From positions 186,001-250,000 of the forward strand of contig NIVC01000708.1 of assembly GCA_002269645.1 (NCBI GenBank): 64,000 nucleotides of DNA. The letters run 5' to 3'. The first letter of the stretch is position 1, and each line of letters begins with the position of its first letter. This DNA is from Macrostomum lignano. Its lineage: Eukaryota. The notes under the pieces were generated by a model. The model saw only the letters and a program-made list of their open reading frames with translations, did no database searches and was not told the origin of the DNA. Shown here piece by piece: positions 3,895-50,928 of this stretch. The position numbers and the translations under genes were made by a program.

Positions 3895-4754
3895 TGACTG
3901 TTGACTTATTGCTAAACAAAACTTTTCAAATATGTAGTTTTTTGACGGCTAGTTTATGGTGTTTGGAATTATTTATCTTTTTCGTGTCATTATTTGCCGT
4001 TTTTTGCTCCTAATAGCTGAAGTGGTGATGGATTGCTTATTTTTGCGTATTTTGTGTTTTTTTATTTTGAGTAAAAAGACTTGTTGCTTGCTTGAATGCG
4101 AGTTCTTTTAGCAGATTTTGTGCTTTGATATTTTTCATATGTTTACAGTTAGAGATTATTTAAGTTTTCAAGACATTTTTCATCCCGTGTTATTTCACTA
4201 ATTATCGTTTGAGCATCTTTGAGTTCGTTTGTGTTCGTTTCTTAGCAGAGATTTTTTGTGTTGGCTAGCGATTGCAAAGGTTTATATTTGGCACACTATC
4301 TTTTGATCCCAATTGACACTTCACATTGCATGCGTTCTTAATGTTAATTTCTGATTTCGCGCGATTTATTTTTTTGTTTACAGGAGTTTACTGTTTTTTC
4401 GAATTATGCTTGCAACCGTTTCAATTAATTGCACGTAAGTTTCAAGGAGGCAATTTTTTTTTCTGCTTTTTTGCTGATTGGCCCCAATCAGGAAGGGGGG
4501 AATGTTCTGGAGGTTCATTTTTTGTCATATTTTTGGGGTTTTACTTATTTAATTGTACATGTATTTGCTCTTTATTTAATGTACATGAGCCAACCCCCCT
4601 CAATTTGCTAACCCCACCCCACGTTAAATAATAATTAAAAAGGGCGTGATTTTTGGTCAGCGTGTTTTTTGCTAGGTACTTGGTTGTTTTGTTTTGCCTG
4701 CGCGAGAACGCAGAGGTATTGAAGCCTACAAGCATCCGATTTTTGCCTACTTAG

Positions 4755-14295: not shown

Positions 14296-17200
14296 TGATC
14301 CTGATCCGGATACTGGTCCTGGTCCCGATCCTGATCCTGATCCTGATCCTGATCCTGATCCTGATCCTGATCCTGATCCTGATCCTGATCCTGATCCTGG
14401 ATCCTGATCCTGATCCTGTCCTGATCCTGATCCTGATCCTGATCCTGATCCTGGATCCTGATACTGATCCTGATCCTGATCCTGATCCTGATCCTGATCC
14501 TGGATCCTGATCCTGATCCTGATCCTGATTCTGATCCTGTCCTGATCCTGATCCTGATCCTGATCCTGATCCTGGATCCTGATCCTGATCCTGATCCTGA
14601 TCCTGATTCTGATCCTGTCCTGATCCTGATCCTGATCCTGATCCTGATCCTGATCCTGGATCCTGATCCTGATCCTGATCCTGATCCTGATCCTGATCCT
14701 GATCCTGATCCTGTTCCTGTCCTGATCCTGATCCTGTCCTGATCCTGATCCTGATCCTGGATCCTGATCCTGATCCTGATCCTGATCCTGATCCTGATCC
14801 TGATCCTGATCCTGATCCTGATCCTGATCCTGATCCTGATCCTGATCCTGATCCTGATCCTGTTCCTGTCCTGATCCTGATCCTGTCCTGATCCTGTCCT
14901 GATCCTGGATCCTGATCCTGATCCTGATCCTGATCCTGATCCTGATCCTGATCCTGATCCTGATCCTCATACTGGTCCTGATCCTGATCCTGATCCTGAT
15001 CCTGATCCTAATACTGGTCCTGATCCTGATCCTGTCCTGATCCTGATCCTGATCCTGATCCTGATCCTGATCCTGATTCTGATCCTGATCCTGATCCCGA
15101 TTCTGATCCTGATCCTGTCCTGATCCTGATCCTGATCCTGATCCTGATCCTGATCCTGATCCTGATCCTGATTCTGATCCTGATCCTGATCCCGATTCTG
15201 ATCCTGATCCTGTCCTGATCCTGATCCTGATCCTGATCCTGATCCTGATCCTGTCCTGATCCTAATCCTGATCCTGTCCTGATCCTGATCCTGATGCTTA
15301 TCCTGATCCTGATCCTGATCCTGATCCTGATCCTGATCCTGATCCTGATCCTGATTCTAATCCTGATCCTGATCCTGATTCTAATCCTGATCCTGATCCT
15401 GATCCTGATCCTGATCCTGATCCTGGATCCTGATCCTGATCCTGATCCTGATCCTGATCCTGATCCTGATCCTGATCCTGATCCTGATCCTAATACTGGT
15501 CCTGATCCTGATCCTGATCCTGATCCTGATCCTAATACTGGTCCTGATCCTGATCCTGTCCTGATCCTGATCCTGATCCTGATCCTGATCCTGATTCTGA
15601 TCCTGATCCTGATCCCGATTCTGATCCTGATCCTGTCCTGATCCTGATCCTGATCCTGATCCTGATCCTGATCCTGATTCTGATCCTGATCCTGATCCCG
15701 ATTCTGATCCTGATCCTGTCCTGATCCTGATCCTGATCCTGATCCTGATCCTGTCCTGATCCTAATCCTGATCCTGTCCTGATCCTGATCCTGATGCTTA
15801 TCCTGATCCTGATCCTAATCCTGATCCTGTCCTGATCCTGATCCTGATGCTTATCCTGATCCCGATCCTGATCCTGATCCTGATCCTAATCCTTATTCTG
15901 TCCTGATCCTGATCCTGATCCTGATCCTGATCCCGATCCTGATCCTGATCCTGATCCCGATCCTGTCCTGATCCTGATCCCGATCCCGATCCTGATCCTC
16001 ATCCTGATCCTGTCCTGATCCTGATCCCGATCCTGATCCTGATCCCGATCCTGATCCTGATCCCGATCCTGATCCTGATCCTGATCCTGATCCTGATCCT
16101 GATCCTGGATCCTGATCCTGATCCTGATCCTGATTCTGATCCTGTCCTGATCCTGATCCTGGATCCTGATCCTGATCCTGATCCTGATCCTGATCCTGTT
16201 CCTGTCCTGATCCTGATCCTGTCCTGATCCTGTCCTGATCCTGATCCTGATCCTGATCCTGATCCTGATCCTGATCCTGATCCTGATCCTGTCCTGATCC
16301 TAATCCTGATCCTGTCCTGATCCTGATCCTGATGCTTATCCTAATCCTGATCCTGATCCTGATCCTGATCCTGATCCTGATCCTGATCCTGATTCTAATC
16401 CTGATCCTGATCCTGATTCTAATCCTGATCCTGATCCTGATCCTGATCCTGATCCTGATCCTGATCCTGATCCTGATCCTAATACTGATCCTGATCCTGA
16501 TCCTGATCCTGATCCTGATCCTGATCCTGATCCTGTTCTGATCCTAATCCTGATCCTGTCCTGATCCTGATCCTTTTCCTTATCCTGATCCTGATCCTGA
16601 TCCTGATCCTGATCCTGATCCTGATCCTGATCCTGATCCTGATCCTGATCCTGATCCCGATCCTGATCCTGATCCTGTCCTGATCCTTTTCCTTATCCTG
16701 ATCCTGATCCTGATCCTGATCCTGATCCTGATCCTGATCCTGTCCTGATCCTTTTCCTTATCCTGTCCTGATCCCGATCCTGATCCTGATCCTGATCCTG
16801 ATCCTGATCCTGATCCTGATCCTTTTCCTTATCCTGTCCTGATCCCGATCCTGATCCTGATCCTTTTCCTTATCCTGTCCTGATCCCGATCCTGATCCTG
16901 ATCCTGATCCTGATCCTGATCCTGATCCTGATCCTGATCCTGATCCTGATCCTGTCCTGATCCTGATTCTGATCCTGATTCTTTTCCTTATCCTGTCCTG
17001 ATCCCGATCCTGATCCTGATCCTGTCCTGATCCTTTTCCTTATCCTGTCCTGATCCCGATCCTTATCCTGATCCTGATCCTGATCCTGATCCTGATCCCG
17101 ATCCTGATCCTGATCCTGATCCTGATCCTGATCCTGATCCTGATCCTGATCCTGATCCTGATCCTGATCCTGATCCTGATCCTGATCCTGATCCTGATCC

Positions 17201-17360
17201 TGATCCTGATCCTGTCCTGATCCTGATCCTGTCCTGATCCTGATCCTGTCCTGAACCTGTCCTGATCCTGATCCTGATCCTGATCCTGATCCTGATCCTT
17301 ATCCTGTCCTGATCCCGATCCTGATCCTGATCCTGATCCTGATCCTGATCCTGATCCTGA
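14296..17360. repeat. (GATCCT)n hexamer array, ~3 kb, with variant units
   Basis: Directly visible. Variants include CTGTC, AATACTGGT, GATGCTTAT and TTTTCCTTAT. Confidence 0.97.
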
Positions 17361-17879
17361 GCCTAATTCGATTTATTGTTCTCAGTTCATGAGGATGTGT
17401 TTATCCCAGAGCTAGATTTACCGTACACATAGGCCAATATATTTTATTTTACTGCGCTTAATACACCTTAGAAATAATGACGCAACACTCCCGAATACTG
17501 TAAAACAGTTTTGAAGCCGACAGTTCAATTACCAATATCACGTGATCTGTTTGATGCGGCAGCAAAATTCTTTTGATAGCTTTTTTCAGAATTTATTCAC
17601 AATTTACTTTTTTGCCAATAAACCATATGATATATAGTATTAGCTAATGCTAAAGATTTGTCTGTGTCTTGAGCTACATCATATCTAGCCTAAAGTCCAA
17701 AAGCTAAGCACTGCAGGTCATTTGATGTTTTCAACAACAGTTTAATATTGGTCCAAGACGTTTTAAAACAAATTTATATTACCATACCTAATTTCATACT
17801 AAATTATATTAAAAAACAACCATGTACACTCTTGCCGGCCACAAGTGGTCACAGAGGGGGGAGGTGTCAGAACACACGT

Positions 17880-20884: not shown

Positions 20885-23800
20885 ATGATGGAAGCTGCAG
20901 CGCTGATCTCCCTGTTAGGGGCTCTGCTCTGCATCGCTACCTGTCTCTGCGACTGTGAGTGAAAGCTTTTTAAACCCTCCAGGGTGTTTTTTCAAGCGAA
21001 ATGGATTTCTAACTTCTCAAGTTCCTATGTTGCAGGTGAGGTGCCGATTCGCAACAAGACTGTACTCAACGCCTGGCAGTCCTCTTATTCCTATTCTTGC
21101 TTTCACGAGAGAGACCAGCTGAATGAGAGCAATGTTCTGAACACAAGCCAAAGTTTTCAGTTCATTCACAGCAATGACAAAAAGCATTTTAACGATAGCG
21201 GATTTCACTGGTTCGCTGTGCAGCTGAGTGAGTCAGTGCTCATCGGTTCTGTGACAGTGAAGGGCAGCGAGGGTGAGTTACACCACAGACCAGTTTTATG
21301 AAGCACTGATTGACTAGTTGGTTAACTTACTTGACATAGCTTCAGGGGGTCCGGGCATCCGGATGCAGCGAGGCGTCGCCGCCCATTTTGCAAACCCCTG
21401 GCGACCAGGGAAGCTGGTGCTGCGGTGTTCTGCAGGGAGATCCGGTGGTGCCAGTGTCCGCAGCGCGGTAGCCCTTAGGTAGCGGACGAGCTGGCAGAGA
21501 TTCTCGGGCCTGAAAACGTCGGAGAGGTTCGAGTTTGGGCCGAGGTAGGTGAAGCCTGTCCTGAGTAAAGGCGGAGCATTCACAGATGAAGTGCTCCGCA
21601 TTCTCGACACCGGAGAGGCAGAAAGGGCATCATTCCTCGCTACGGATTTTTCCTGAAGGTAACGATGCCTGGCAAAACAGCCATGACCCGAGAGGTCCAT
21701 GGTCACCGCCCTGATGTCCCTGCGGTTGAGTCCAAGCAGGACTCTTGGCTAGTTGGTTGGTTTCATAAAAACAGCAGCTGCTTTTTGAAACAAAATAACT
21801 GAGGTAGCAGCATTCCTGAAACCCCCTTGCTTCCGGTATTTTTACAATCTCGTTGTTCTGGCTATAATTTCAGTCTTCTCGGATGCTGAAATGTTCCGCA
21901 GCTCAGCTGGCATCGAGATCTGGACTTCGAACTCGGAGGAGCAACTGTTTTCTGGCAACCATTGCAACTCAAAGAATATGAGCAAACAGTTTAATAAATA
22001 CCGGACCAGTTGGAAGCGTTGCGGTGTCACTACAAATAGGTCGATAAGTAGCACGCGTGTTGGGCTCTACATAGTGGACTGTCTTGCAGAGGTGAGCATC
22101 GATGCTACAGAGATTATGTGCTTAATTAGTTCATCTCACCCGGATCTCAAAATGTTGAGTGCAACATCCCAGGTCCGGTATCTGCTCCTCAGGAGAAACG
22201 TCAGCCTGAGCTTCTCAGCCAAAGACTACGGCTATCTGAGCGTCTCAGATCTGACGCTGCAGACAGTGCGCCTGGGTGAGGCTGTGGACTTTCCCAAAGC
22301 ACTTGAAGACCAGAGAAGCCTCAAAAGTGGCATGAAAATACCTGATAATATTGTGAGCTTTGGCCTGACTTTCTAGTCATCAGGCTTGTGCACTCTCTGT
22401 GCATTGGGGGCTGGCCTTCATGGGTCATGAATGACACGAGAACTCTCACGGTAAATAGCATTATAGCATTAAAGTATAAATTTATATGACTTGATTTGCA
22501 GTGCCATCGACAGACCAACTTGTTGCTGCAAACGAAAGCTTTAACGTGAGCTGCTCGTGCATTCTATGCAACGGCACGGAGTTGAGCACGAACTCAAGGC
22601 AGCTGCAGCTGTGCCAACCAGACGGAAACTGCACGAAAACCCGGAAGCTGTCGGTTGTGAAGGCACAGTCGCAGCACTCTGGCCTCTACACCTGCCAGCT
22701 TGGCTCTGCCGCAGAGTCAACTTCCATCACAGTGCTGTGTGAGCTGAGTGTCATTGCTTGTCTCCATATTTAAATACAATTAATAGACAAAAGCAACCAT
22801 AACGTGTTGCATTTTCAGCATCCTCGCATGCGCAAACAGCAGCCGAGAACGACAGTTTTGCAGTGAGCTGCACGCTGTACTTCAATGGTTCGGAGATCAT
22901 TGGTAACAACACAAGCGGCATGCAGCTGTGCCAACCAGATGGGAACTGCAGTGCGGGCCCGGAGCTGCGGATCAACAGGGCGCTGCGGCAGCACTCCGGC
23001 AGCTACACCTGCCAGGTGAACTCCACTCGAGTTTCAACCTTCGTTACCGTGCTGTGTGAGTTTCATTTCAATTTGAAATTGATTGGATAAAGAATGGCAT
23101 TTTAACTCATCTGAAATGTTTGTCGTTAGCCCTACAAAAAACTTAGACAATAAGTTTCCACTTGACTAAAAAGCTTGCGATACAGATAATGATGTCGTTG
23201 TGTTGTTGGTATTGTGTTTTTTATTTGTTGTTTAAAACTCAAACTCTCTTATTTGTAAAAAAATGTTGCACAAGCATCGTACTTGGATCTGGCTCAGCCC
23301 GATTAAAGCATCGAACTTGGATCTGGCTCAGCCCGATTAAAGCATCGAACTTGAATCTGGCTCAGCCCGATTAAAGCATCGACTTGGATCTGGCTCAGCC
23401 CGATTAAAGCATCGAACTTGGATCTGGCTCAGCCCGATTAAAGCATCGAACTTGGATCTGGCTCAGCCGATTAAAGCATCGAACTTGGATCTGGCTCAGC
23501 CCGATTAAAGCATCGAACTTGATCTGGCTCAGCCCGATTAAAGCATCGAACTTGGATCTGGCTCAGCCCGATTAAAGCATCGAACTTGAATCTGGCTCAG
23601 CCCGATTAAAGCATCGAACTTGGATCTGGCTCAGCCCGATTAAAGCATCGAACTTGGATCTGGCTCAGCCCGATTAAAGCATCGAACTTGGATCTGGCTC
23701 AGCCGATTAAAGCATCGAACTTGGATCTGGCTCAGCCCGATTAAAGCATCGAACTTGGATCTGGCTCAGCCCGATTAAAGCATCGAACTTGGATCTGGCT

Positions 23801-26800
23801 CAGCCCGATTAAAGCATCGAACTTGGATCTGGCTCAGCCGATTAAAGCATCGAACTTGGATCTGGCTCAGCCCGATTAAAGCATCGAACTTGGATCTGGC
23901 TCAGCCCGATTAAAGCATCGAACTTGGATCTGGCTCAGCCCGATTAAAGCATCGAACTTGATCTGGCTCAGCCCGATTAAAGCATCGAACTTGGATCTGG
24001 CTCAGCCCGATTAAAGCATCGAACTTGGATCTGGCTCAGCCCGATTAAAGCATCGAACTTGGATCTGGCTCAGCCCGATTAAAGCATCGAACTTGGATCT
24101 GGCTCAGCCCGATTAAAGCATCGAACTTGGATCTGGCTCAGCCCGATTAAAGCATCGAACTTGGATCTGGCTCAGCCCGATTAAAGCATCGAACTTGGAT
24201 CTGGCTCAGCCCGATTAAAGCATCGAACTTGGATCTGGCTCAGCCCGATTAAAGCATCGAACTTGGATCTGGCTCAGCCCGATTAAAGCATCGAACTTGG
24301 ATCTGGCTCAGCCCGATTAAAGCATCGAACTTGGATCTGGCTCAGCCCGATTAAAGCATCGAACTTGGATCTGGCTCAGCCCGATTAAAGCATCGAACTT
24401 GGATCTGGCTCAGCCCGATTAAAGCATCGAACTTGGATCTGGCTCAGCCCGATTAAAGCATCGAACTTGGATCTGGCTCAGCCCGATTAAAGCATCGAAC
24501 TTGGATCTGGCTCAGCCCGATTAAAGCATCGAACTTGGATCTGGCTCAGCCCGATTAAAGCATCGAACTTGATCTGGCTCAGCCCGATTAAAGCATCGAA
24601 CTTGATCTGGCTCAGCCCGATTAAAGCATCGAACTTGGATCTGGCTCAGCCCGATTAAAGCATCGAACTTGGATCTGGCTCAGCCCGATTAAAGCATCGA
24701 ACTTGGATCTGGCTCAGCCCGATTAAAGCATCGAACTTGGATCTGGCTCAGCCCGATTAAAGCATCGAACTTGGATCTGGCTCAGCCCGATTAAAGCATC
24801 GAACTTGGATCTGGCTCAGCCCGATTAAAGCATCGAACTTGATCTGGCTCAGCCCGATTAAAGCATCGAACTTGGATCTGGCTCAGCCCGATTAAAGCAT
24901 CGAACTTGGATCTGGCTCAGCCCGATTAAAGCATCGAACTTGGATCTGGCTCAGCCCGATTAAAGCATCGAACTTGGATCTGGCTCAGCCCGATTAAAGC
25001 ATCGAACTTGGATCTGGCTCAGCCCGATTAAAGCATCGAACTTGGATCTGGCTCAGCCCGATTAAAGCATCGAACTTGGATCTGGCTCAGCCCGATTAAA
25101 GCATCGAACTTGGATCTGGCTCAGCCCGATTAAAGCATCGAACTTGATCTGGCTCAGCCCGATTAAAGCATCGAACTTGGATCTGGCTCAGCCCGATTAA
25201 AGCATCGAACTTGGATCTGGCTCAGCCCGATTAAAGCATCGAACTTGGATCTGGCTCAGCCCGATTAAAGCATCGAACTTGGATCTGGCTCAGCCCGATT
25301 AAAGCATCGAACTTGGATCTGGCTCAGCCCGATTAAAGCATCGAACTTGGATCTGGCTCAGCCGATTAAAGCATCGAACTTGGATCTGGCTCAGCCCGAT
25401 TAAAGCATCGAACTTGGATCTGGCTCAGCCCGATTAAAGCATCGAACTTGGATCTGGCTCAGCCCGATTAAAGCATCGAACTTGGATCTGGCTCAGCCCG
25501 ATTAAAGCATCGAACTTGGATCTGGCTCAGCCCGATTAAAGCATCGAACTTGGATCTGGCTCAGCCCGATTAAAGCATCGAACTTGATCTGGCTCAGCCC
25601 GATTAAAGCATCGAACTTGGATCTGGCTCAGCCCGATTAAAGCATCGAACTTGGATCTGGCTCAGCCCGATTAAAGCATCGAACTTGGATCTGGCTCAGC
25701 CCGATTAAAGCATCGAACTTGGATCTGGCTCAGCCCGATTAAAGCATCGAACTTGGATCTGGCTCAGCCCGATTAAAGCATCGAACTTGGATCTGGCTCA
25801 GCCCGATTAAAGCATCGAACTTGGATCTGGCTCAGCCCGATTAAAGCATCGAACTTGGATCTGGCTCAGCCCGATTAAAGCATCGAACTTGGATCTGGCT
25901 CAGCCCGATTAAAGCATCGAACTTGGATCTGGCTCAGCCCGATTAAAGCATCGAACTTGGATCTGGCTCAGCCCGATTAAAGCATCGAACTTGGATCTGG
26001 CTCAGCCCGATTAAAGCATCGAACTTGGATCTGGCTCAGCCCGATTAAAGCATCGAACTTGATCTGGCTCAGCCCGATTAAAGCATCGAACTTGGATCTG
26101 GCTCAGCCCGATTAAAGCATCGAACTTGGATCTGGCTCAGCCCGATTAAAGCATCGAACTTGGATCTGGCTCAGCCGATTAAAGCATCGAACTTGGATCT
26201 GGCTCAGCCCGATTAAAGCATCGAACTTGGATCTGGCTCAGCCCGATTAAAGCATCGAACTTGATCTGGCTCAGCCCGATTAAAGCATCGAACTTGATCT
26301 GGCTCAGCCCGATTAAAGCATCGAACTTGATCTGGCTCAGCCCGATTAAAGCATCGAACTTGGATCTGGCTCAGCCCGATTAAAGCATCGAACTTGGATC
26401 TGGCTCAGCCCGATTAAAGCATCGAACTTGGATCTGGCTCAGCCCGATTAAAGCATCGAACTTGGATCTGGCTCAGCCCGATTAAAGCATCGAACTTGGA
26501 TCTGGCTCAGCCCGATTAAAGCATCGAACTTGGATCTGGCTCAGCCCGATTAAAGCATCGAACTTGGATCTGGCTCAGCCCGATTAAAGCATCGAACTTG
26601 GATCTGGCTCAGCCCGATTAAAGCATCGAACTTGGATCTGGCTCAGCCCGATTAAAGCATCGAACTTGGATCTGGCTCAGCCCGATTAAAGCATCGAACT
26701 TGATCTGGCTCAGCCCGATTAAAGCATCGAACTTGATCTGGCTCAGCCCGATTAAAGCATCGAACTTGGATCTGGCTCAGCCCGATTAAAGCATCGAACT

Positions 26801-29800
26801 TGGATCTGGCTCAGCCCGATTAAAGCATCGAACTTGGATCTGGCTCAGCCCGATTAAAGCATCGAACTTGGATCTGGCTCAGCCCGATTAAAGCATCGAA
26901 CTTGGATCTGGCTCAGCCCGATTAAAGCATCGAACTTGATCTGGCTCAGCCCGATTAAAGCATCGAACTTGGATCTGGCTCAGCCCGATTAAAGCATCGA
27001 ACTTGGATCTGGCTCAGCCCGATTAAAGCATCGAACTTGGATCTGGCTCAGCCCGATTAAAGCATCGAACTTGGATCTGGCTCAGCCCGATTAAAGCATC
27101 GAACTTGGATCTGGCTCAGCCCGATTAAAGCATCGAACTTGGATCTGGCTCAGCCCGATTAAAGCATCGAACTTGGATCTGGCTCAGCCCGATTAAAGCA
27201 TCGAACTTGATCTGGCTCAGCCCGATTAAAGCATCGAACTTGGATCTGGCTCAGCCCGATTAAAGCATCGAACTTGGATCTGGCTCAGCCCGATTAAAGC
27301 ATCGAACTTGGATCTGGCTCAGCCCGATTAAAGCATCGAACTTGGATCTGGCTCAGCCCGATTAAAGCATCGAACTTGGATCTGGCTCAGCCCGATTAAA
27401 GCATCGAACTTGGATCTGGCTCAGCCCGATTAAAGCATCGAACTTGGATCTGGCTCAGCCCGATTAAAGCATCGAACTTGGATCTGGCTCAGCCCGATTA
27501 AAGCATCGAACTTGGATCTGGCTCAGCCCGATTAAAGCATCGAACTTGGATCTGGCTCAGCCCGATTAAAGCATCGAACTTGGATCTGGCTCAGCCCGAT
27601 TAAAGCATCGAACTTGATCTGGCTCAGCCCGATTAAAGCATCGAACTTGGATCTGGCTCAGCCCGATTAAAGCATCGAACTTGGATCTGGCTCAGCCCGA
27701 TTAAAGCATCGAACTTGGATCTGGCTCAGCCCGATTAAAGCATCGAACTTGGATCTGGCTCAGCCCGATTAAAGCATCGAACTTGGATCTGGCTCAGCCC
27801 GATTAAAGCATCGAACTTGGATCTGGCTCAGCCCGATTAAAGCATCGAACTTGGATCTGGCTCAGCCCGATTAAAGCATCGAACTTGGATCTGGCTCAGC
27901 CCGATTAAAGCATCGAACTTGGATCTGGCTCAGCCCGATTAAAGCATCGAACTTGGATCTGGCTCAGCCCGATTAAAGCATCGAACTTGGATCTGGCTCA
28001 GCCCGATTAAAGCATCGAACTTGGATCTGGCTCAGCCCGATTAAAGCATCGAACTTGATCTGGCTCAGCCCGATTAAAGCATCGAACTTGGATCTGGCTC
28101 AGCCCGATTAAAGCATCGAACTTGGATCTGGCTCAGCCCGATTAAAGCATCGAACTTGGATCTGGCTCAGCCCGATTAAAGCATCGAACTTGATCTGGCT
28201 CAGCCCGATTAAAGCATCGAACTTGGATCTGGCTCAGCCCGATTAAAGCATCGAACTTGGATCTGGCTCAGCCCGATTAAAGCATCGAACTTGGATCTGG
28301 CTCAGCCCGATTAAAGCATCGAACTTGGATCATGGCTCAGCCCGATTAACCCACAGATCCGCCCTCAGTCGTGTCAACCCCACTGCTGCACGCTGCCAGC
28401 TGTAGTGACCTGTCAAATGTGACTGTACAATTCACTTTATCCGACTCTCAGCCGAAGCCTCAGCATTGGTGGTGTAAAATTTCATCTGATACAAGTGGAT
28501 TCGAAGCCCACAACCTGACCCTTCTGTCTCTGGTAAGTCTCTGTATCGGTACATTGTCGCTTGATGCGACAGTTTTTGCAGAATGTTGTAAAGTGAGTTT
28601 ACTCACTGGTTTGTTTTGCTAGTCGGTGTTTGGGGGTCAAGGGATGCGATTTACAAGCGTTCTCGAGTAAATATAAGAATAGCTCCACCCTTCGAGTGAG
28701 GGTTTGAAATTTTGTTTGTTGGACTAAACCTGACTGGTCTGTCTCTCGCTCACTACATTTTGGTGTCGTGCGGAGAAATCAATTGATTTGGGCTAGCGTG
28801 ACTCAGCACAAGCGCGAACTCTAAAATCTGCCAAGTCATGAGCAGCACAGAAGGCGCAAATGCAAGTGCAATGGGCGACCCACAGCGAGGGTCCCAACTG
28901 CAGACGGTGATCACTGCAGACGGTGAGCGATCAAGGATCGTCACTGCAGACGGTGAGCGAGTGCAGACAGTCGGCACGAGAGCCCTGCCTGACTGGATCC
29001 CAGGCCGGTTCGACCAGTTGACTCAGGGACTCGGACACATCAAAGGATTTCAGCACAGGCCGCGAGTCAACCCCACGGTGCAACCGACTGCTCAACCGTT
29101 GCGCAGAGTGCCGCTAAGCCTAAGGGATTCGGTTCAAAAGGAGATCGACCAGCTGCTGCAGCAAGGCATCATCGAGGAGGTCGACGCCTCAGACTGGGTG
29201 TCAAACCTAGTCGTGGTGCCAAAGGCGAACGGCTCGATCCGGATCTGCAACGACCTGAAAGGCCCAAACAAGAGCATCATACTGGACAGATACCCACTTT
29301 CGACCTTTGAGGAGCTCTCCGCCGAGTTCGCCGGGTTGCGATGCTTCTCCAAGTTAGACCTGAATTCGTCTTACCTGCAACTGGAGTTGGCCGAGGACTG
29401 CAGAAATCTGACGACGTTCGTGACGGAGCGAGGCCTATATCGATATCGGAGGGTGTGCTTCGGCCTGAGTAGTGCACCGGCTGCGTTCAAGAAGGTGATG
29501 GCTAAGATCCTCTTGACTTACTTTTGACTTAGCTGCAGGGCTGTCCCGGAGGGGACACAGCGGGAAGGCGCGGGCGCCCATTCCGCTAGTCCCTGAACGG
29601 CCGACGCGTCGCTATGGACGGAGGGTTGGCGCCGCCCAGGGAGGTCCCCCAGTGTCGCCAGCAGCTATGGTGCTCTCTGGAAAGGAGAGTTCAGACCTGC
29701 GGGTGGCCCGAAGGTAGCGCATGAGCTGATTAAAGTTTTCGGGTTTGCACGCTTCAGTAATAGATGTGTGTGGCCCGAGGTAAGTGAGTCTGGCCCGCGT

Positions 29801-32800
29801 GAAGGCGGGACAGATGCTGACGAAATGATCAGCGGTTTCGTCACCTGAGTTGCAGAAACTACAGGTGGCGTTGGTGGCGTTGCCCTGCAGGTACTGGTGC
29901 CTGGAGAAGCAGCCGTGACCAGAGAGGGTCATGGTGGCAGCCCGGATGTCTCTGCGCGAGAGGCGCAAGAGGAGCTTCCGGAGCTGGTGAGAGGGCTGAG
30001 GGACAGCGCCTCTGGATTGCCTGCAGTTCGTGCGGTTCGCCCAAGTCGAGCGGTGCTGAGTCCTGATCCACGCTTTGATGCGCGAGTCGATGACACAGCC
30101 AGGAATCGGGACAAGAGGTTCGGGGCCGAGAGAGGAGCCGGAGGCACCAACTTTTGCAAGGGTGTCAGCCAACTCATTTCCTCGGATCCCCACATGCCCC
30201 GGAACCCACTTAAGGGTAATTTTGTTGGCGGAACCCAACACATTGAGGAGTTTGATACAGTCAAGGACTGTAGCAGAGTTGGTGCTGCAGCCACTGATGG
30301 CGTGCAAGGCAGCTTGGCTGTCCGAATGGAAAATGATGTTCTTACCAGTAACGCCAGTGGCGAGAAGCTCTGCAGTGCAGGAGCTGATGGCCAGAACTTC
30401 ATTTTGGAAAACACTGGAGTTGACCCCAGTGTATTGAGCGTGGGTAGCGATGACCCTCCCGTTCAGAAAGATTCCAACACCAAAGCCGGTGTTGGCTGAC
30501 TGCTTAGAACCGTCGGTGTAGCAATGAAGCTCACCAGGGTTCCAATGGTCATTGATGTTATCGCGCGAGTCGATAGCTACGGAGTAGCGCTGTCTCAGGT
30601 TGAGCGTTGAGGCAATGCCATCGGTGAAGACGCGATTGGCCTGACACTCGTTGAGAAAGTTGAGGCACAGATCGCTATGCGGGACAAGGTTCCGCTTAGC
30701 AGGTGCTCTCATGTAAATGAATTTGACGCCGGCATCAATTAGACGCCGCGTCGTTCTAGCCGCCTCACCCCTGATGAAGAGGTCAAGAGGCGGAAGATTA
30801 AGGAAGGCCCCCATGCCAGCAAAGGGCGTGGACCTGGTGGCGTTGCAGATGAGCCTACACGCTCTGCCTTGGATCGTGTTGAGCAGGTCTGCATGGCTTT
30901 TGACCTGGGTAGCGCTAACCCAGACAACAGAGGCGTACGTAATGGCAGGTCTAACTACGGAAGTATAGATCCACCAAAGCCGCTTTGGGGATAGACCCCA
31001 AGAAGTGCCAAGTGCTCGTCGGAGCTGGGCCAGGATGGCTGAGGCACGCTTGGCTTTTGCTTTCACGTGGAGGACCAGTTGAGCCGGTGGTCAAGTATGA
31101 CCCCGAGACATCTGGTCTGGTGCGCGAAGGCAATATCTCTGCCGTAGAGCTGCAGAGGACGTATGTTCCAGCGTAGTCTGCTGGTAAACATAATGGCAAC
31201 GGTTTTGGGCTCAGAGAGTTCCAGACCATTGTCATTGGCCCAGGATTCTGCTTTGCGGATAAAGCTCTGCATCAGATCCCTGAGCGTGCTGGGAGACGGT
31301 CCTGCCACAATGGCCGTGACGTCATCAGCATACCCGACTTTGAAGACGGGGTCGGGTCGGGAGTCACTCAAAGAGCGTCCATGACCAGGTTCCAGAGCGT
31401 CGGGGTGAGGACTCCGCCTTGGGGTCCACCCTTACAGACTCTGGTGGAGGCAGTTTGCCCAAGAAGTTGGGCAGTGACCGTACGGTTGGAGATCATGTAC
31501 ATGATCCACCGTATGAGGGTAGCATGAGCTTTGCGATTTTGAAGGGCCCTCTGAAACGCTTCAAAGATAACGTTGTCGAAGGCGCCAACAATGTCAAGAA
31601 AGAGAGCCAGAGCGTAACCGTCACCCAGTACCGCCCTTTCAATCTTCTCGACAATCGCATGCAGGGCGCTGTCAGTCGACCTCCCGGTACGGAAGGCGTG
31701 CTGATTATTGCTGAGGGGCATCGCTGTCAGCTCGCAGGACAGCAGCCGCCAGAGAATAAGCCTCTCAGTGAGCTTAAGCATTGCTGACGTTAAGCTAATA
31801 GGCCGGAAGGCCTTGACGCTTTGGTAGTCACCCTTCCCAGGTTTGGGAATAAAGACTACCCGAGCTTCAGTCCAGCATTTGGGAACGTATCCCAGCTGGA
31901 TAGAGGCCCGCATAAGATTGCGGGTGAGTCTCAGGAACGAGGGTATCTTGGCTGCTTCACGAAGGAGAACAGGGTAGATACCATCAGGTCCAGGAGATTT
32001 GAAGGGTTTGAAGGTTCTGACCGCACGAGCGATTAGGTCTTCAGTGACAATGCCCGCCGCTAGGGTGGCTCCATCCATCGAATGGTTGGGCTCCGGTCTA
32101 GCAGTAGGTACCCTCGGGAAGAATGTGCTAAGCATATGCTGAAGCACTTCTTCAGGGTCTTTAGTAAGAGAGCCATCATCTTTTTTGATCATGGCTAATT
32201 TGGACATTTTGTCCATTGTAAGGGCCTTGACAAGCCTAGAAGTAGGTCTGTCTTGATCCAATTCATTGCAGAATTGGCGCCACTTACATTCCTTGGCCTT
32301 GCGCACTTCAGATTTGAAATTGCGGGAGGCTTGCCGGAAAAGCTCCATGTCCTCCGGGTTTCCGGTCTTCATGGCACGGCGATGAAGGCTTTTGGCCTTC
32401 CGCCTGAGTTTCCCCAGCTCCGGGTTCCACCACGGCGCCGAGGTCTTGCCTTTGTAGGCGCGAGCAGGACAAGCCGCTTCGTAGGCTTCAATAATGCAAC
32501 CTGTCAGCGTCTCAGCCATATGATCCACATCCTCGCAGGTCTCAATCGGACGTAAGTCCGTGAGTTCCTGCAGGTGCAGATCAAGGGCAGCCTTGTAGGC
32601 CGCCCAATCAGTGTTGCGGATATTGCGTCTCCAAGTGATCGGAGACTGGGTTTTAGTGTCCGCGATGTTAAAGGCGATAAAGCAGTGGTCAGACAGGGAG
32701 GGCTCCTCAGACCAGACTCTCCACTCCTCAACTCTGTCAAAGAGTCTTGGGGTAACGAGTGTGGCGTCGAGGACCTCGGTCCATCTGCCATTATTAAAGG

Positions 32801-35800
32801 TAGGAGTGCTGCCGCGGTTGCAGAGCATGAGGTTTGTGTTAGAGATGAGGGCCAGAAGCTCCTCTCCTCTAGTGTTGGTATCTTTGCTGCCCCAGTGCTT
32901 GTGGTGCGCGTTGAGGTCGCCCCCTAAGCACAGCTCAGCGTTCTGGGACTCGCAGTACTTCGCGAGGCGCAGTAAACTCTCAGGAGCAGGGTCTCTGTCG
33001 CCTGGGATATAAACCGAGGCAACAAGACACGTACGCGGAGAGAAATGATTAGATTGGATGACACAAAGGTCTCCATCAGAGAGATCAGTCCTCAGCCAAG
33101 CCTGGAGATGGCTAGCAGCGAGGATAGCCGCTCTAGGGCGGCTGTTCCCCGGGCCACACACATAAAAATCAGAGTAGCCAGAGGGAATGTTGGGCAACTT
33201 ACCGTTGCGCATCCAGGGTTCCTGGATCAGGATGAGGCCTGGCCTGTACAGCTCAGCAATCTTCATCAGATTTACTGACGCAGATACGCAATGCTGTAAA
33301 TTAATTTGCAGACAGAATGTCGCTCCTTTGGCAGCGTGGAGCTTAGTCATACTGTATTAAATGCAATTTCTGGCTAGAGCCCAGGGCCATCAAGGAGACT
33401 TGGACAACAGATCGTCCTCGTCCCAGGCCGCTGGGGCTTGACTGGGAGATGGGAGTTGGTCGACGTCCATGGCCTCCTCACCCCCACCGGCCCCCCCAGC
33501 AGAGTCCTCAGGCTCCGATGACAGGATGGAGGAAGCTTCCTCACCTGCATCTTTACCTTCAGACCCCACCAGGGTGGCCGAGGAGAGCTCGGATTCCGAA
33601 GACCCGGCCTCGTCCTCAACTCCTTCTCCGACTGGCAGGTTTGGTTCCCGGGGCTTGGCCGGAGCCGTTACCACGGTCGCCGAACTGCTGCTAGCAGAGG
33701 GGCGAGATGCAGCTTTGGCTTTGGGATCGGCTTGCGCCTTTCCTTGGGCCTTAGACTGCGCCCCGCTCTTGCCGGAGATGCCGGGGTTGGCAGTAGCCTT
33801 CCCTTTGGCAGACTTTCCTCGGCGCATCTTGAGCTTGAGGGCACCCAGCTGGAAAGAGGATCCATTAGGGTACCGACTCGCCCAAGTGCTGGAAAGGCCG
33901 AGGACAATTGAGTTGCCCGTCTCCCCCCTGCGGACTTTACGGTGATACACCAGTCCACTAGCAGGGAGGTCGGGGTTCAGACGCAGTAGGACCCGGCGAA
34001 TAACGTCTGGTCCAGCTGCGGTGCTCTTAGCAGGGACGAAAATCACATAGGGTATCGTCTTTGGACGCTGGCCCTCGCGAAGAAAAAGAGCTCCGCCAAG
34101 GTCAGCATCCAAGGAGACCGTCGGTAGCCGCTGGAGCAGCTGCCGAGCGTCCTCCTCGCTGCTAGGAGCAATAAGAACGAATGTGCTTCGCAGCACCATC
34201 CGCTCAACGCCGATGGAGATTCCCTCCTCGACAGTCAGCTCAATCAGATAGGAGTCAACAGCACTCCACACTTTTTGAAGCTGATCAGTGGTCCAGTCCT
34301 GGTCGCGACCTTGGATGATCACTCCCGGGATTTTGGCCTTGGCCTTCGCCGCAAAGGTAGCTCCCGAAGGAACCTCCTTGTTGGCAGTGGCCATTTGTTG
34401 CGCCGTGGTTTCGGCCTCAGCAGCCGCGGCAGCAGCTCCAGGGAGCGCCGCCGCTGAACTACTGGAGCTTCCACCGGCCGGCCCGCCTGGTTGCCTTGGG
34501 ACTCCAGTCGCTTCAGCATCCATGGTGGACGCCGCCGCTTTGGCCCCCGCAGCTCCCTTCTTGGCCTGCCTTTTGGCGCGTTGTTTAGCGCGTTTGCGCT
34601 CAAGCCGAGCCCGCTGAGCTTCATCGGATCTGCCAGATTTGGCCGGTCCTTTAGGCTCAGAGCTCGCGGTTCCCTTAGATCCACCAGCGGAGCTGGCAGG
34701 TCTTTGGGTATTATGAGTTTGGTAGCTCTGGTCGGATCTGCCAGCAGAGCCAGCCGGTCCTTCCTTTGCCACAGTTGAATCAGTCGGTTGGGATCTGCCA
34801 GCAGGGCCGGCCGGTCCTTCGGACTGAGGTTGGGGTTTAGAAGGGTCCCCGTCCCTAGAGTTAGCTTGATTATCCATAGACGGCTCGAAGGCCATGATAA
34901 AAGGTTGGTGGGCTACCCTCAAAGGGGCGCGGTACCCACCCGGCCGCTCCACCTGACCGGGCAGTAGGCCAATAGCACCCTCAAGGCTGGCCCGACACCA
35001 GGAGGGGGACCGCTTGCGACCGGACTACTCCCCGGCCTTCCAGCCCATCGGCACGGTCAACACCTTAGGCATTAGAGAGTACGTTGAGCAGTACCACGGC
35101 CTGCAGGTTGGCGAGCCAGACCCGCATACCCAAATTCGGCCGAAGCCACTGGATAGGGTCGCCAGCGCCGGAGCCCAGTCTGTCCAGCAGCCCTAGGGAC
35201 TGCCTTGAACACACGCGGGGACGAGTACCCTGGGTCGACTTGCGAGACAGCGTGGGGGGGGGGGTCTGCGGCTGCCAGAGGCAAATAGAGGGTGCAGACC
35301 TCCCACCAGCCTTGACCTGCTGAAGATAGGGGCAGGCGTGAAGCATCGCAGACCTTAGCCCATGGGCCTAGTCTGTCTCATACTTCACTGGCATGCTGAA
35401 TACGCCTTCGCGTGCGGCTAAGATCCTCAGTGGCATCAAAGGCGCAGTGCACTTTATTGACGACATCGTAGTGCACGCGGCATCAATAGAAGAGCACGAC
35501 AAGCGCCTGTTCAAGGTGCTGCAAGCTCTGATGACGCACAACGTGACTATCAATACGGCCAATTGCTTGCACCTGGCGCCAGGAAAAGGTCAACTTCCTA
35601 GGCTATGAGCTGAGCGCTTCTGGAGTCCGCCCGTTGCAGTCACACGTCGAAGCTATCGAGAAGGTACAGCCGCCAACGAACACCAATGAAGTGGCTGCGT
35701 TTCTAGGCGTCGTGAAGTACTTCGGCAACTTCATTCCCAGCCTCTCCAGCACGGCGGAGCCCCTCATGAAACTGCTGAGGAAGGACGAGTCGTGGAAGTG

Positions 35801-38583
35801 GACCAGTGAGTGCCAGCAGGCTTTTGAGCAGCTGAAGGCAGGAGTGTGCAAGCCACCTTGCCTCAAGTTTTTCGACGCAGATCAGCCGATCATCGTCAGC
35901 TGCGACAGCTCAGCATCAGCTCTCGGTGCGATGCTCCTCCAGCAAGACTCCGACGGCCAGTGGCGCCCGGTTGCCTTTGCGAGCCGAACTCTGAGTGCTA
36001 CGGAGCGCCGCTACTCGGCGAGCGAGAGGGAAGCCCTGGCCTGCATCTTCGCCTGTGAGCGCTGGAACTTCTTCCTTTACGGCCGACGGTTCGAGCTCCA
36101 CACCGATCACCAGGCTCTCACCACGCTGCTGTCATCATCTGGGAGCGGACACCGGCCACTCAGACTGCATCGCTGGGCTGATCGTTTGTTAAACTACTCC
36201 TTCACCGTCAAGTACGTCCCGGGTGCCAAGAACATCGTGCCCGACTTTCTGTCGCGCTGCCAGGACATGGCCGAGCCGACGGAAGGCGATGAAACAGACG
36301 ATCTGGAAGTCCAAAGAGTGCTCCTGGCCGAGGCGCTGACCGTGGTCACCGAGGACGAACTGGCGGAGGCAACGTCAAAGGACGAGCTCCTGGCACGAGT
36401 CGCAGAGTTCACAGTTTCCGGTTGGCCAGACAAGAAAAAGCTCGATGAGCGCCTGCTGCCCTACTGGAGTGTCAGGAACGAGCTGACTGTTTGGAGCAAC
36501 GGCAGGTGCTTGGCCATGGGAACTCGTGCCGTCATACCGGAAGAACTGCGCCAGCGAGTGCTCGACTTAGCGCATCAAGGTCACAAGGGAGTCAGCAGGA
36601 CCAAGCATCACTGCCGAGACACCGCGTGGTGGCCCAAAATGGACAGCGACATCGAGAGGTTCGTCAGCAGCTGCTCTGCGTGCATCATCAGTGAGAAGAC
36701 CTTCAAGCCGCATCGGACAGTGCTGACCCCGACCGAGTGGCCGAAGGAACCGTGGACAGAGCTGCAGATCGACTTGTTCGGAGAGCTGCACGAGGGTGCG
36801 CCAGAGAACTGCCGCTTCATACTCGGTGTACACGACCTGCATTCAAAGTGGCCCGAACTGGTCTGCCTCTCTTCAGCGACGTCTGCGACTATCATCAAGA
36901 GTCTCATGGCGCTGTTTTGTCGCTGGGGCATTCCGCGCGTAATCACCACCAATGAAGGACCCCAGTTCATCTCCCAGGAGTTCAACGACTTCCTAAAGGC
37001 GTACGGCATCAATCATCGTCAGACTCCGTTCTACCACCCTCAAGGAAATTCCGGAGTGGAGCGCCTGAACCGCGTAGTCAAAGGGCTTGAAGAGCCACCT
37101 TCAAGACGGCTACTCGTTCCTGGAAGCGGTGCAGTCCATCCTGTGGGCGTACCGATCGACACCGCACGCACTGACCGGCGTGACGCCAGTGGAGCTGATG
37201 CTCGGCCGCAAGATCACCACGCCGCTGTGGACGCTGCAGCCGAAGCGAGAGACTCGAGAGCACCCACTGGCCGATCAGATCCAGGAGCGGCAAAGACGGC
37301 AGTTCAAGCGGCTCAACAGATCCCGGCAGCCGCCGCGCCAATTCCGGGTTGGCGATCTTGTGCGAGTGCGATCTCCGCGGATGCGAGGCAAGCTGCAGAG
37401 CCACGTGTCACCACCTCTACGGGTCAGCGACGTCATCAGCCCGACGATCGTCAGGTTAGAGGACGGCTCAAGGTGGCACACCAGCCTCTGTATGCCTCAT
37501 GCGGAGCCCGAGGGTGCCAGCACGACTTCGGCAACGGCAATGCCGCCACAACCGCCAGTGGCTGCAGAGCCGGCAGCGCCAGAAGGTCCGACAGACCCGC
37601 CGCCGGCGACCGCTGAGGCCGACGCGGAGCTGCGGCGCAGTACGCGACTGCGGGCACCACCGTTGTGGTACGGCCAGGTCGTGACGCATTGATTGCCAGC
37701 TGTGAAGGGAATTAGTGGCTGTTAAGGAGGAGGGTGAATGTTGTAAAGTGAGTTTACTCACTGGTTTGTTTTGCTAGTCGGTGTTTGGGAGTCAAGGGAT
37801 GCGATGTACAAGCGTTCTCGAGTAATATAAGAATAGCTCCACCCTTCGGGTGAGGGTTAGAAATTTTTTTTGTTGGACTAAACCTGACTGGCTTGTCTCT
37901 CACTCACTACACAGAACTCAAGCGAAAACGGCTCTGTCAGCTCGTGGCAACTCAACATTGATAAGGAGCAGAGACCGGGATCGATGCAGGAAGCCAAGCT
38001 CGAGTGCAGCGCTGTGCAGCTCCTGCCGCCGAGAGTCGGGCTCCAGTGGGTGCACTCAGCCACAGCAGAGCTGGACTGCAGAAGCTCAAACAAAGCTCAG
38101 ACCTCCATGCCGACAGTGCTGGTGGCAGCATCGGCCACCATTGCCATATGCGTTGGTCTGCTTCTGGCAGCAATGGTTAGCGCTTGAAACTGCCTAAAAT
38201 TTGGTATCTTCGCTGGCTGCCAATCTCTCCGCTTTCTAAACTGATTGATGGCTTTGAAAACAACCGATTTTTTTCGTACTTTTAGCTGATGAAGCATCGC
38301 GCTTTGGCCTACAGCCCGGTGACAGCAACGGCAGCCGCCACCCGAGAGAGTGGAGTGAGCCGCTTCATTTTTTCCTTTTCTAGTTTTTATGCACTTTTAC
38401 ATAAAACCTTACTCTGCAATTGCCGCTCAGTCTCAGCACGAGCAGGAACTGGTAGAGCTCGGCTGCCCACCAACTGGAGCTTCTGCCACAGCTTCCGGTC
38501 CAAGTACGGAGTGCCTAGTCCGCCACTGCCAATACGGGAGCGAGTGCACCGTGTACTTGGATATTGTTGCCACGGGTCCGTGA
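20885..38583 (+). CDS. Lectin-like/Ig-superfamily type-I membrane receptor, paralog C (~586 aa). Exons 20885-20954, 21036-21272, 21874-22091, 22173-22275, 22502-22738, 22819-23055, 28357-28532, 37915-38175, 38286-38354, 38431-38583
   Basis: All nine introns are GT-AG with matching phases (1,1,0,1,1,1,0,0,0) and the joined 1761 nt contains no internal stop. The protein has signal peptide [23 protein letters not shown], a galactose-binding-like fold pattern (AWQSS...WFAVQL...IGSVTV...IEIW...VRYLLL...LSVSDL), two Ig exons (..SG.YTCQ..TVL) and a VLYPP linker. The [22 protein letters not shown]|LM is followed by KHR. Many NxS/T sequons are present. Confidence 0.8.
21324..21748 (-). mobile_element. 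5'-truncated LOA/R1-group LINE fragment in intron 2 of receptor C
   Basis: [43 protein letters not shown] matches the ORF2 C-terminus at ~29700-29990. It is flanked by the 10-bp direct repeat CTAGTTGGTT (21314-21323, 21749-21758). Confidence 0.85.
23272..28349. repeat. 34-bp satellite (GAACTTGGATCTGGCTCAGCCCGATTAAAGCATC), ~149 highly homogeneous units, within an intron of receptor C
   Basis: Period 34 checked on the ruler. Variants are mostly 1-nt losses in GG or CCC runs. No spacers. Confidence 0.98.
28584..28757 (+). repeat. Gypsy 5' LTR (174 bp)
   Basis: Matches 37739-37911. Confidence 0.95.
28838..29512 (+). pseudogene. Gypsy pol, N-terminal part (protease remnant + RT N-half)
   Basis: ORF 28838-29527 reads ...[10 protein letters not shown] and resumes after the LINE as [12 protein letters not shown]. 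Confidence 0.9.
29612..33350 (-). CDS. LINE ORF2 (APE endonuclease-RT-RNase H-Zn knuckle), split by two single-base deletions
   Basis: QINLQHC, LIQEPW, GDLNAHH and SDH (APE); QGGVLTP and GYADD (RT); YTDGSK, SDSQAAL and [15 protein letters not shown] (RNase H); [14 protein letters not shown]. Frameshifts near 31371 and 31068. Confidence 0.9.
33390..34895 (-). CDS. LINE ORF1 (DUF4780-like core, low-complexity flanks)
   Basis: Open frame 33390-34952 with first ATG at 34895. The core [13 protein letters not shown]...[16 protein letters not shown]...[13 protein letters not shown] resembles LOA-clade ORF1 (family assignment by eye). Confidence 0.75.
   Translation of the reverse strand: MAFEPSMDNQANSRDGDPSKPQPQSEGPAGPAGRSQPTDSTVAKEGPAGSAGRSDQSYQTHNTQRPASSAGGSKGTASSEPKGPAKSGRSDEAQRARLERKRAKQRAKRQAKKGAAGAKAAASTMDAEATGVPRQPGGPAGGSSSSSAAALPGAAAAAAEAETTAQQMATANKEVPSGATFAAKAKAKIPGVIIQGRDQDWTTDQLQKVWSAVDSYLIELTVEEGISIGVERMVLRSTFVLIAPSSEEDARQLLQRLPTVSLDADLGGALFLREGQRPKTIPYVIFVPAKSTAAGPDVIRRVLLRLNPDLPASGLVYHRKVRRGETGNSIVLGLSSTWASRYPNGSSFQLGALKLKMRRGKSAKGKATANPGISGKSGAQSKAQGKAQADPKAKAASRPSASSSSATVVTAPAKPREPNLPVGEGVEDEAGSSESELSSATLVGSEGKDAGEEASSILSSEPEDSAGGAGGGEEAMDVDQLPSPSQAPAAWDEDDLLSKSP
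35429..37692 (+). pseudogene. Gypsy pol, C-terminal part (RT C-half, RNase H, integrase); two frameshifts, second integrase Asp replaced (TTNEGPQF vs TDNGPQF)
   Basis: ORFs 35393-35608, 35634-37616 and 37087-37692, with frameshifts near 35578 and 37082. Confidence 0.9.
37739..37911 (+). repeat. Gypsy 3' LTR
   Basis: Matches 28584-28757; preceded by the PPT and followed by the TSD. Confidence 0.95.
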
Positions 38584-50146: not shown

Positions 50147-50928
50147 CCGAAATCATATCTCGGACACTTCATATCTCCAACAAGCTTAACCCTATCCCTA
50201 AACCTAATCCCTAAAGTGTCGGAGATATGAAGTGTCGGAGATATGAATTGTCGGAGATATGAAGTGTCGGAGATATGAAGTGTCGGAGATATGAAGTGTC
50301 AGCGGAGCTATGAAGTGTCGGAGATATGAATTGTCGGAGATGTGAAGTTTCGGAGATATGAATTGTCGGAGATATGAATTGTCGGAGATATGAATTGTCG
50401 GAGATATGAATTGTCGGAGATATGAAGTGTCGGAGGTATGAAGTGTCGGAGATATGAAGTGTCGGAGATATGAAGTGTCGGAGATGGGAAGTGTCGGAGA
50501 TATGAAGTGTCGGAGATATGAAGTGTCGGAGATGTGAAGTGTCGGAGATGTGAAGTGTCGGAGATATGAAGTGTCGGAGATGGGAAGTGTCGGAGATATG
50601 AAGTGTCGGAGATGTGAAGTGTCGGAGATATGAATTGTCGGAGATATGAAGTGTCGGAGATATGAAGTGTCGGAGATGCGAAGTGTCGGAGATATGAAGT
50701 GTCGGAGATATGTGAATCGTCGGAGATATGAAGTGTCGGAGATGGGAAGTGTCGGAGATATGAAGTGTCGGAGATGTGAAGTGTCGGAGATATGTGAATC
50801 GTCGGAGATATGAAGTGTCGGAGATGGGAAGTGTCGGAGATATGAAGTGTCGGAGATATGAAGTGTCGGAGATATGAAGTGGCGGAGATATGAAGTGTCG
50901 GAGATATGAAGTGTCGGAGATATGAATT
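50147..50928. repeat. 16-bp array (AAGTGTCGGAGATATG) preceded by two inverted units and a telomere-like CCCTAA core; possible non-autonomous element
   Basis: Inverted units at 50154-50182, core TTAACCCTATCCCTAAACCTAATCCCTAA at ~50186-50214, and the direct array at 50214-50928. Confidence 0.85.

Follow-up and report, generated by a model that had tools for sequence, protein, structure and literature searches.

The co-option of a target-site duplication (TSD) as the 3' AG of an intron is a documented mechanism of introner introns in Micromonas, Aureococcus and dinoflagellates (PMC11282704, PMC9860276). The TSD gives the terminal AG and the element gives the adjoining intron sequence, making precise removal possible in principle. 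We describe here a locus of similar geometry in a 64,000-nt stretch of the genome of the flatworm Macrostomum lignano (contig NIVC01000708.1, positions 186,001 to 250,000; hereafter the window, numbered from its first letter). A Ty3/Gypsy long terminal repeat (LTR) retrotransposon, itself carrying a long interspersed nuclear element (LINE), sits at the border between a 49-nt intron and the transmembrane (TM) exon of a gene, hereafter gene B, for an immunoglobulin (Ig)-like type I membrane protein. On balance, we favor the interpretation that this insertion has produced a truncating allele, tolerated because the tandem family to which the gene belongs is redundant.

The locus is an insertion of a transposable element (TE) at a splice junction, a known type of event, and it resembles introners and the Drosophila retrotransposon 412 in its geometry. 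Introners are short, multi-copy, mostly DNA transposons, and they create new introns in exons, whereas the gene B insertion is a single 9.3-kb LTR element plus LINE located beside an existing intron, whose old acceptor persists as a competitor. In the vermilion gene, 412 is likewise an LTR retrotransposon located in an exon and spliced from the precursor RNA via sites at or in the element, with partial gene function (Fridell, Pret and Searles 1990, Genes Dev 4:559; cited in PMC4691828). The splicing of 412 is described as imprecise and dependent on cryptic sites, and it is efficient only in su(s) mutants; at gene B the potential junction is precise and in phase, but the native acceptor must be skipped.

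Two further comparisons are relevant. Mutagenic intronic endogenous retroviruses (ERVs) of the mouse IAP and ETn groups also place a sense LTR within a transcription unit, where aberrant splicing into the element and premature termination are expected; fixed ERVs show an antisense bias, and sense-oriented LTR elements in introns are a class selected against (PMC1794541). These are mammalian, exon-definition systems, and the quantitative behavior may differ in a flatworm such as ours, which has short introns and spliced-leader (SL) trans-splicing. The element itself shares with the ‘K02A2.6-like’ Ty3/Gypsy elements of teleosts and sea urchin the order reverse transcriptase (RT)-RNase H-integrase, a 5-bp TSD and short TG..CA LTRs, with pol proteins 45-59% identical. 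In contrast to that group, no Pfam match to gag or protease was found in our Gypsy element, and since its best database match is just 59% identical, it represents a distinct and apparently non-autonomous family.

A nested retrotransposon two nucleotides inside the transmembrane exon

The gene B model, assembled from borders read in the sequence and guided by M. lignano relatives, comprises 10 exons and a coding sequence (CDS) of 1,761 nt for 586 amino acids, with GT-AG borders throughout and neither stop nor frameshift. Gene B and the Gypsy element both lie on the plus strand. Exon X (28357-28532, phase 1 to 0), homologous to positions 13418-13584 of a second family copy in the window, paralog A, and to M. 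lignano proteins, ends in ...NLTLLSL (nucleotides CTGTCTCTG). A preliminary description of the window had proposed a phase-0 intron of about 49 nt opening with GTAAGT, and we could read it at 28533-28581 from the donor CTG/GTAAGT (slashes mark splice or insertion borders) through the branch-like motif TTGAT and a T-run to the acceptor TTTTTGCAG/AA, whose AG (28580-81) is the first one downstream of the donor.

A homologous phase-0 GT-AG intron precedes the motif [SN]SS[EG][ND]G in gene B (49 nt), in paralog A (81 nt) and in a further M. lignano contig, Mlig_3_7 NIVC01002544.1 (hereafter L001; 73 nt, 21039-21111). Searching the window by tblastn with the two flanking gene B exons placed the paralog A features at 13418-13950 on the plus strand, namely the exon X homologue (13418-13584), the intron (13585-13665) and the TM exon (13666-13950), the site being uninterrupted in this copy. 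Judged from these homologues, the site is a conserved intron, not a chance pattern of open reading frames (ORFs).

The insertion point (28583/28584) lies 2 nt within the TM exon, which downstream of the element is read at 37915-38175 (phase 0 to 0). The whole element spans 28584-37911 (9,328 bp) in the orientation of its host gene, between identical copies of the 5-bp TSD CAGAA at 28579-28583 and 37912-37916. This duplication had been proposed previously, as had the 3' junction, which we likewise read as ...TTGTCTCTCACTCACTACA/CAG/AAC. The TSD straddles the intron-exon border, and its second copy contains the AG of a distal acceptor (37913-14). It had further been claimed that the TSD rebuilt the acceptor, a point on which we differ: integration took place 2 nt past the original acceptor, which was thereby copied and at no time lost, and the native AG at 28580-81 is intact upstream. 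An assembly chimera was considered and ruled out by the exact TSDs found at both nesting levels.

The element is a pol-only Ty3/Gypsy LTR retrotransposon. Its 5' LTR (28584-28757, 174 nt) begins with TGTTGTAAAG and ends with CTCACTACA, while the 3' LTR (37739-37911, 173 nt) is directly preceded by the polypurine tract (PPT) AAGGAGGAGGGTGAA (37724-37738). Both have TG..CA ends (TGTTG... to ...CTACA) and differ by eight mismatches and one 1-nt indel, corresponding to ~95% identity or ~5% divergence. Pfam matches occur on the plus strand in the order RVT_1, RT_RNaseH/RT_RNaseH_2, Integrase_H2C2 and rve, colinear with residues 84-1022 of the best homolog, protein P0001. The pol ORF opens 81 nt past the end of the 5' LTR; its N-terminal part with the start of the RT (28838-29512; RVT_1; tblastn with P0001 residues 84-277) is cut by the LINE, and the rest, with the C-terminal part of the RT, RNase H (RT_RNaseH), integrase (Integrase_H2C2, rve) and a C-terminal extension, resumes at 35429-37689, again by tblastn with P0001. 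Two frameshifts (near 35567 and 37082) and no stop were found in pol. The trinucleotide TGG begins 4 nt after the 5' LTR (28761), but the window, scanned in full for tRNAs and Rfam families, gave no matches and hence no tRNA to pair with a primer-binding site. The element is single-copy in the window, where no other copy or solo LTR was found.

Without the LINE, the Gypsy measures ~3.4 kb. The element carries four sense polyadenylation (poly(A)) hexamers (AATAAA or ATTAAA, at 29729, 31848, 32793 and 33356), a donor-like GAG/GTAAGT at 29780 and a TATA-like TATAAG in the 3' LTR. Two coincidences were noted at the LTR ends. The first 15 nt (28584-28598) hold both an in-frame TGA and a consensus GTGAGT donor. 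At the opposite end, the last 18 nt (37897-37914) translate in frame as LSLTTQ, which resembles LTLVEQ at the exon junction of the M. lignano protein P0121, so that the tblastn alignment runs on into the LTR.

The LINE (29513-35415, minus strand, ~5.9 kb) is a non-LTR element with ORF1 followed by an apurinic endonuclease-RT-RNase H ORF2 (Pfam Exo_endo_phos_2, RVT_1, RNase_H), the latter spread over three frames by two frameshifts. It is antisense, splits the Gypsy RT and is flanked by a 13-bp TSD, GGCTAAGATCCTC, at 29500-29512 and 35416-35428. Its removal in silico restores the Gypsy RT across the ...VMAKIL/ junction, including the motif FIDDIVV. The LINE inserted later, into the Gypsy RT.

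Proximal and distal acceptors

Splicing from the donor at 28533 to the proximal acceptor reads AAT GTT GTA AAG TGA into the LTR, where the TGA at 28594-96 is a stop codon met after four codons. The resulting product has 430 amino acids, ends with LSLNVVK and lacks the TM segment and the tail. A donor-like AAA/GTGAGT is found at 28593-98, 12 nt past the proximal AG; joined to the distal acceptor, it would define an 11-nt microexon and shift the frame. The full-length protein would be obtained solely by a direct 28533-to-37914 splice that skips the native acceptor located 9.3 kb upstream.

Short introns are recognized across the intron, splice sites are committed co-transcriptionally and the first AG after the branch point is used. 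On these grounds, we infer that the proximal acceptor is the default choice, as it closes an untouched 49-nt intron and is transcribed 9.3 kb before its distal counterpart. The original splice site remains a competitor, whose use leaves the LTR exonic; a self-healing insertion would require that no such site be left.

In the scenario that we favor, the sense-oriented, pol-only Ty3/Gypsy element integrated 2 nt inside the TM exon of gene B, which encodes an Ig-like type I membrane protein specific to its lineage, and the LINE entered the Gypsy RT in a later step. The CAGAA duplication left two identical CAG/AA acceptors, of which the upstream copy closes the unaltered 49-nt intron. Most transcripts would probably retain the proximal splice, continue into the LTR and terminate four codons later (...LSLNVVK), leading either to a 430-amino-acid protein deprived of TM segment and tail or to RNA degradation, while the donor-like GTGAGT, if used, would give the frameshifting microexon. 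A minor share of full-length mRNA may arise from the distal acceptor, which looks competent. Such an allele would be tolerated owing to the redundancy of a tandem family in a TE- and satellite-rich region. The intact native acceptor with the stop codon behind it, the sense orientation of the Gypsy, its sense poly(A) hexamers, its location in a tandem multi-copy family, the exonic insertion in paralog A (see below) and the absence of a gene B protein from the collections searched argue for this scenario.

The alternative that survives best, although we consider it unlikely, was put forward in the preliminary description: the full 9.3-kb nested element would be removed within a 9,382-nt intron that joins the 28533 donor to the acceptor in the second TSD copy (37914), restoring the original mRNA and a functional gene by a TE-driven expansion of the intron from 49 nt to 9.4 kb. 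One half of this proposal stands, in that the second TSD copy and the LTR end supply adjoining splice signals forming a plausible in-phase acceptor that may be used. A CTGAC motif at 37884-37888 offers a branch A at a distance of 27 nt from the G of the distal AG; next comes the pyrimidine-rich tract that had been described, TGGCTTGTCTCTCACTCACTACAC, which is ~70% pyrimidine and free of AG, and then CAG/AA in the original phase. The other half, the rescue of the gene, is unsupported and overlooked the intact proximal acceptor and the stop codon at 28594-96 to which that acceptor leads.

The quality of the distal site weighs against a truncating allele, and several other observations point in the same direction. 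A crude, generic pyrimidine-tract position weight matrix (PWM) scores the distal site at 4.0 and the proximal one at 0.7, the other acceptors of the gene ranging from ~0 to 4.9. The proximal score falls within that range, and a second crude PWM, built from 15 acceptors of this gene family, which prefers a T-run directly before CAG as at the proximal site, reverses the ranking, with 5.8 for the proximal and 3.4 for the distal site; given that the two matrices rank the sites oppositely, we conclude just that both look competent. In addition, the strong donor-like site 12 nt past the proximal AG could sterically hinder the use of that AG. The ~5% divergence of the LTRs suggests an old insertion and, together with the later nested LINE, a long persistence. 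Repeat-expanded introns are tolerated in this family, since gene B already has a 5.3-kb intron filled with a minisatellite and an M. lignano paralog carries a (GATA)n array in its homologous intron. Finally, the 586-amino-acid ORF is complete, with 10 of 10 exons open and bounded by GT-AG, and gene B has kept the family-conserved cysteines and, downstream of the insertion, the C-terminal motif CTVYL[DE]IVA. Precedents for removal of the element also exist in the introner TSDs that act as 3' AG (PMC11282704, PMC9860276) and in 412 at vermilion (cited in PMC4691828).

Against full-length splicing, the native proximal acceptor, transcribed first and closing a complete intron, must be skipped. The element is in sense orientation with sense poly(A) hexamers and the donor-like GAG/GTAAGT at 29780, and no gene B protein was found in the protein collections searched. 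The openness of the downstream exons had been presented as support for the rescue. The TM exon and the two cytoplasmic-tail exons (38286-38354 and 38431-38583) are indeed open with GT-AG borders, but this has little discriminating power when measured against the reading frames of the TEs, which have been neutral since insertion and are of the same age as the insertion or younger. Over ~2.9 kb, Gypsy pol shows two frameshifts and no stop relative to P0001; LINE ORF2 shows two frameshifts over ~3.7 kb, and ORF1 is open across 1.56 kb. Taken together, the TE ORFs contain no stops and four frameshifts in ~8 kb, i.e. ~0.5-0.7 frameshifts per kb. At this rate, the chance that exons 8-10 (483 nt) stay open is ~0.7, or ~0.6-0.8 when stops are allowed for, so that open downstream exons barely discriminate between the models. 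For the whole 1,761-nt CDS, the chance of remaining intact at the TE-derived frameshift rate is ~0.3-0.4. An intact CDS at ~5% LTR divergence is hence mild evidence for continuing constraint and, as such, a further point against a truncating allele, but a secreted, truncated form might just as well be the target of this constraint.

A generalization of the same idea, to which we give a similarly low probability, would be that in this Gypsy family the U5 end brings along a complete 3' splice region, composed of CTGAC and a pyrimidine-rich tract. Combined with an AG-containing TSD, insertions at acceptors would then be self-healing, and gene B would have had its 49-nt intron converted into a TE-filled one of 9.4 kb in a single step without losing function.

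Gene B, paralog A and their family

Gene B has every part of a Macrostomum family of Ig-like type I membrane proteins (the A0A1I8GJD6 / BOX15_Mlig012084g1 group), which is characterized by a signal peptide, an N-terminal GFHWFAVQL domain, one or more Ig-like exons, a cysteine-containing membrane-proximal domain (ECSAVQ.LPP), a TM segment and a short tail with a conserved C-terminal motif. In gene B, the signal peptide exon (20885-20954) is followed by three exons for the N-terminal domain (21036-21272, 21874-22091 and 22173-22275), whose borders were read from the sequence with the help of homology to M. lignano proteins, and by two Ig-like exons, both phase 1-1 (22502-22738 and 22819-23055); the membrane-proximal domain, TM segment and tail complete the protein. 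These six upstream exons (20885-23055) are homologous to the M. lignano proteins P0121, P0122 and P0132. Pfam matches to Ig in gene B are sub-threshold, and no Pfam domain was found for the N-terminal or membrane-proximal domains.

The introns of gene B measure 76-601 nt, apart from two long ones of 5,301 nt (minisatellite) and 9,382 nt (TE). The former, located before exon X, is filled with 150 copies of a 34-bp minisatellite (23272-28349; Tandem Repeats Finder, 99% match) that stops 7 nt before the acceptor AG. Each 34-bp unit contains GGCTCAG, a possible decoy acceptor. The tail ends in a C-terminal motif common to P0132 and P0133, in which it reads DCTVYLEIVADAN before the stop codon. A degeneration of the gene B tail, which is devoid of the YENSEYKLEN found in paralog A and P0121, was considered and rejected, as the CTVYLDIVA end matches that of a second subtype, P0132/P0133.

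The family is arranged in tandem, with at least four members within 22 kb in L001 and two copies in the window. In another M. lignano paralog, the homologous intron holds a (GATA)n array (L001 15945 to at least 16400) that exceeds 400 bp, indicating that this intron has been repeat-expanded more than once in the family. An exhaustive profile search retrieved three convincing relatives only, all of them M. lignano ‘Ig-like domain-containing proteins’ that span the junction (P0121, E 1e-22), and an N-terminal query matched solely M. lignano proteins (~40% identity, E 2e-38). The joined peptide of exon X, TM and tail gave no match in a word-indexed protein search. No protein covering gene B was found in 5.8 billion sequences or in 1.84 billion representatives, and gene A is likewise present in no searched protein collection; repeat filtering during annotation may account for both absences.

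The proteins of A and B are 36% identical, with conserved cysteines and ECSAVQ.LPP motif, and gene B is the more divergent from the M. lignano proteins. A 392-bp tract that takes in an Ig exon and runs into the next intron (4791-5182 in A, 22843-23232 in B) has a core more than 99% identical, amid other A/B exons that are just ~36-40% identical at the protein level, which points to a recent gene conversion or patch duplication. This tract has no power as a test of selection, with one exonic and two core intronic differences.

Paralog A bears an insertion of its own. A sense BEL/Pao element (61-4790) with an ORF at 61-3894 (DUF1759, Integrase_H2C2, DUF5641), a PPT at 4490-4503 and a 3' LTR at 4504-4790 ends within the paralog A Ig exon at 4790/4791, and the window lacks the acceptor and the first 24 nt of this exon. 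Gene A therefore looks disrupted too, unless its phase 1-1 exon is skipped. The position of the BEL/Pao inside an exon suggests that disruptive insertions are tolerated at this locus.

These observations also bear on a still less likely explanation, according to which gene B was already silent or decaying when the element arrived, or was expressed only as a truncated secreted form, the acceptor position being coincidental and without selected splicing consequence. It would fit a region dominated by TEs and satellites, a 5-kb minisatellite ending 7 nt before the exon X acceptor AG, a paralog interrupted within an exon, the greater divergence of gene B and the absence of gene B from the protein collections searched. 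However, the 1,761 nt are free of stops and frameshifts, the splice sites, signal peptide and conserved cysteines are intact, and the near-identical A/B tract shows recent exchange or duplication, not old decay. Least probable of all, and purely inferential, is a use of the distal acceptor mainly for SL trans-splicing or for RNAs initiated in the element or its 3' LTR, giving 5'-truncated transcripts with TM and tail exons only: SL trans-splicing affects ~39% of M. lignano genes (PMC5730564), its typical substrates are acceptors that lie at a distance from any committed donor and have a good branch and pyrimidine tract, and the 3' LTR holds TATAAG, but the first downstream in-frame methionine (GSMQEAK...) would give a protein without signal peptide.

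Genomic setting and significance

LTR elements account for 21% of the M. lignano genome, and simple or tandem repeats for 15% (PMC5730564). The window, with its LTR elements, LINEs, DIRS-like and BEL/Pao sequences and many tandem arrays, fits this published picture. Besides the elements described above, a young-looking retroelement at 8128-12282 lies between two direct repeats of 197 bp with 99% identity (8128-8323 and 12087-12282) and contains a SAP-domain ORF (8336-9382), an internal tandem array with a 12-bp unit (9482-10154) and an RT ORF (10156-11898). A DIRS-like fragment on the minus strand (5224-7230), with a sub-threshold Phage_integrase (tyrosine recombinase) match beside the C-terminal part of an RT, occupies a large intron or gap of gene A, and a 3-kb (TGATCC)n array (14296-17364) begins ~20 nt past the gene A stop codon. 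The window (50214-50944) and L001 (7718-8615) have in common a 16-bp satellite, AAGTGTCGGAGATATG, at ~88% identity. Downstream of gene B, ~38600-64000 has no recognizable genes and consists mostly of successive minisatellites, unrelated to one another, whose periods range from 4 to 81 nt.

As it stands, the locus is a well-resolved TE insertion that most likely truncates one gene of a redundant receptor family restricted to this lineage. In practice it is chiefly of use as a test locus, since identical CAG/AA sites with different upstream contexts and donor distances constitute a natural 3' splice-site competition experiment. If the distal acceptor were efficiently used, gene B would represent a natural case of an LTR retrotransposon neutralized by its own TSD, an LTR-retrotransposon counterpart of the TSD-assisted intron formation of introners, and an intron expanded in one step within a genome that combines short introns with a heavy TE and satellite load. 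It would then bear on how Macrostomum genes survive amid an LTR content of ~21%.

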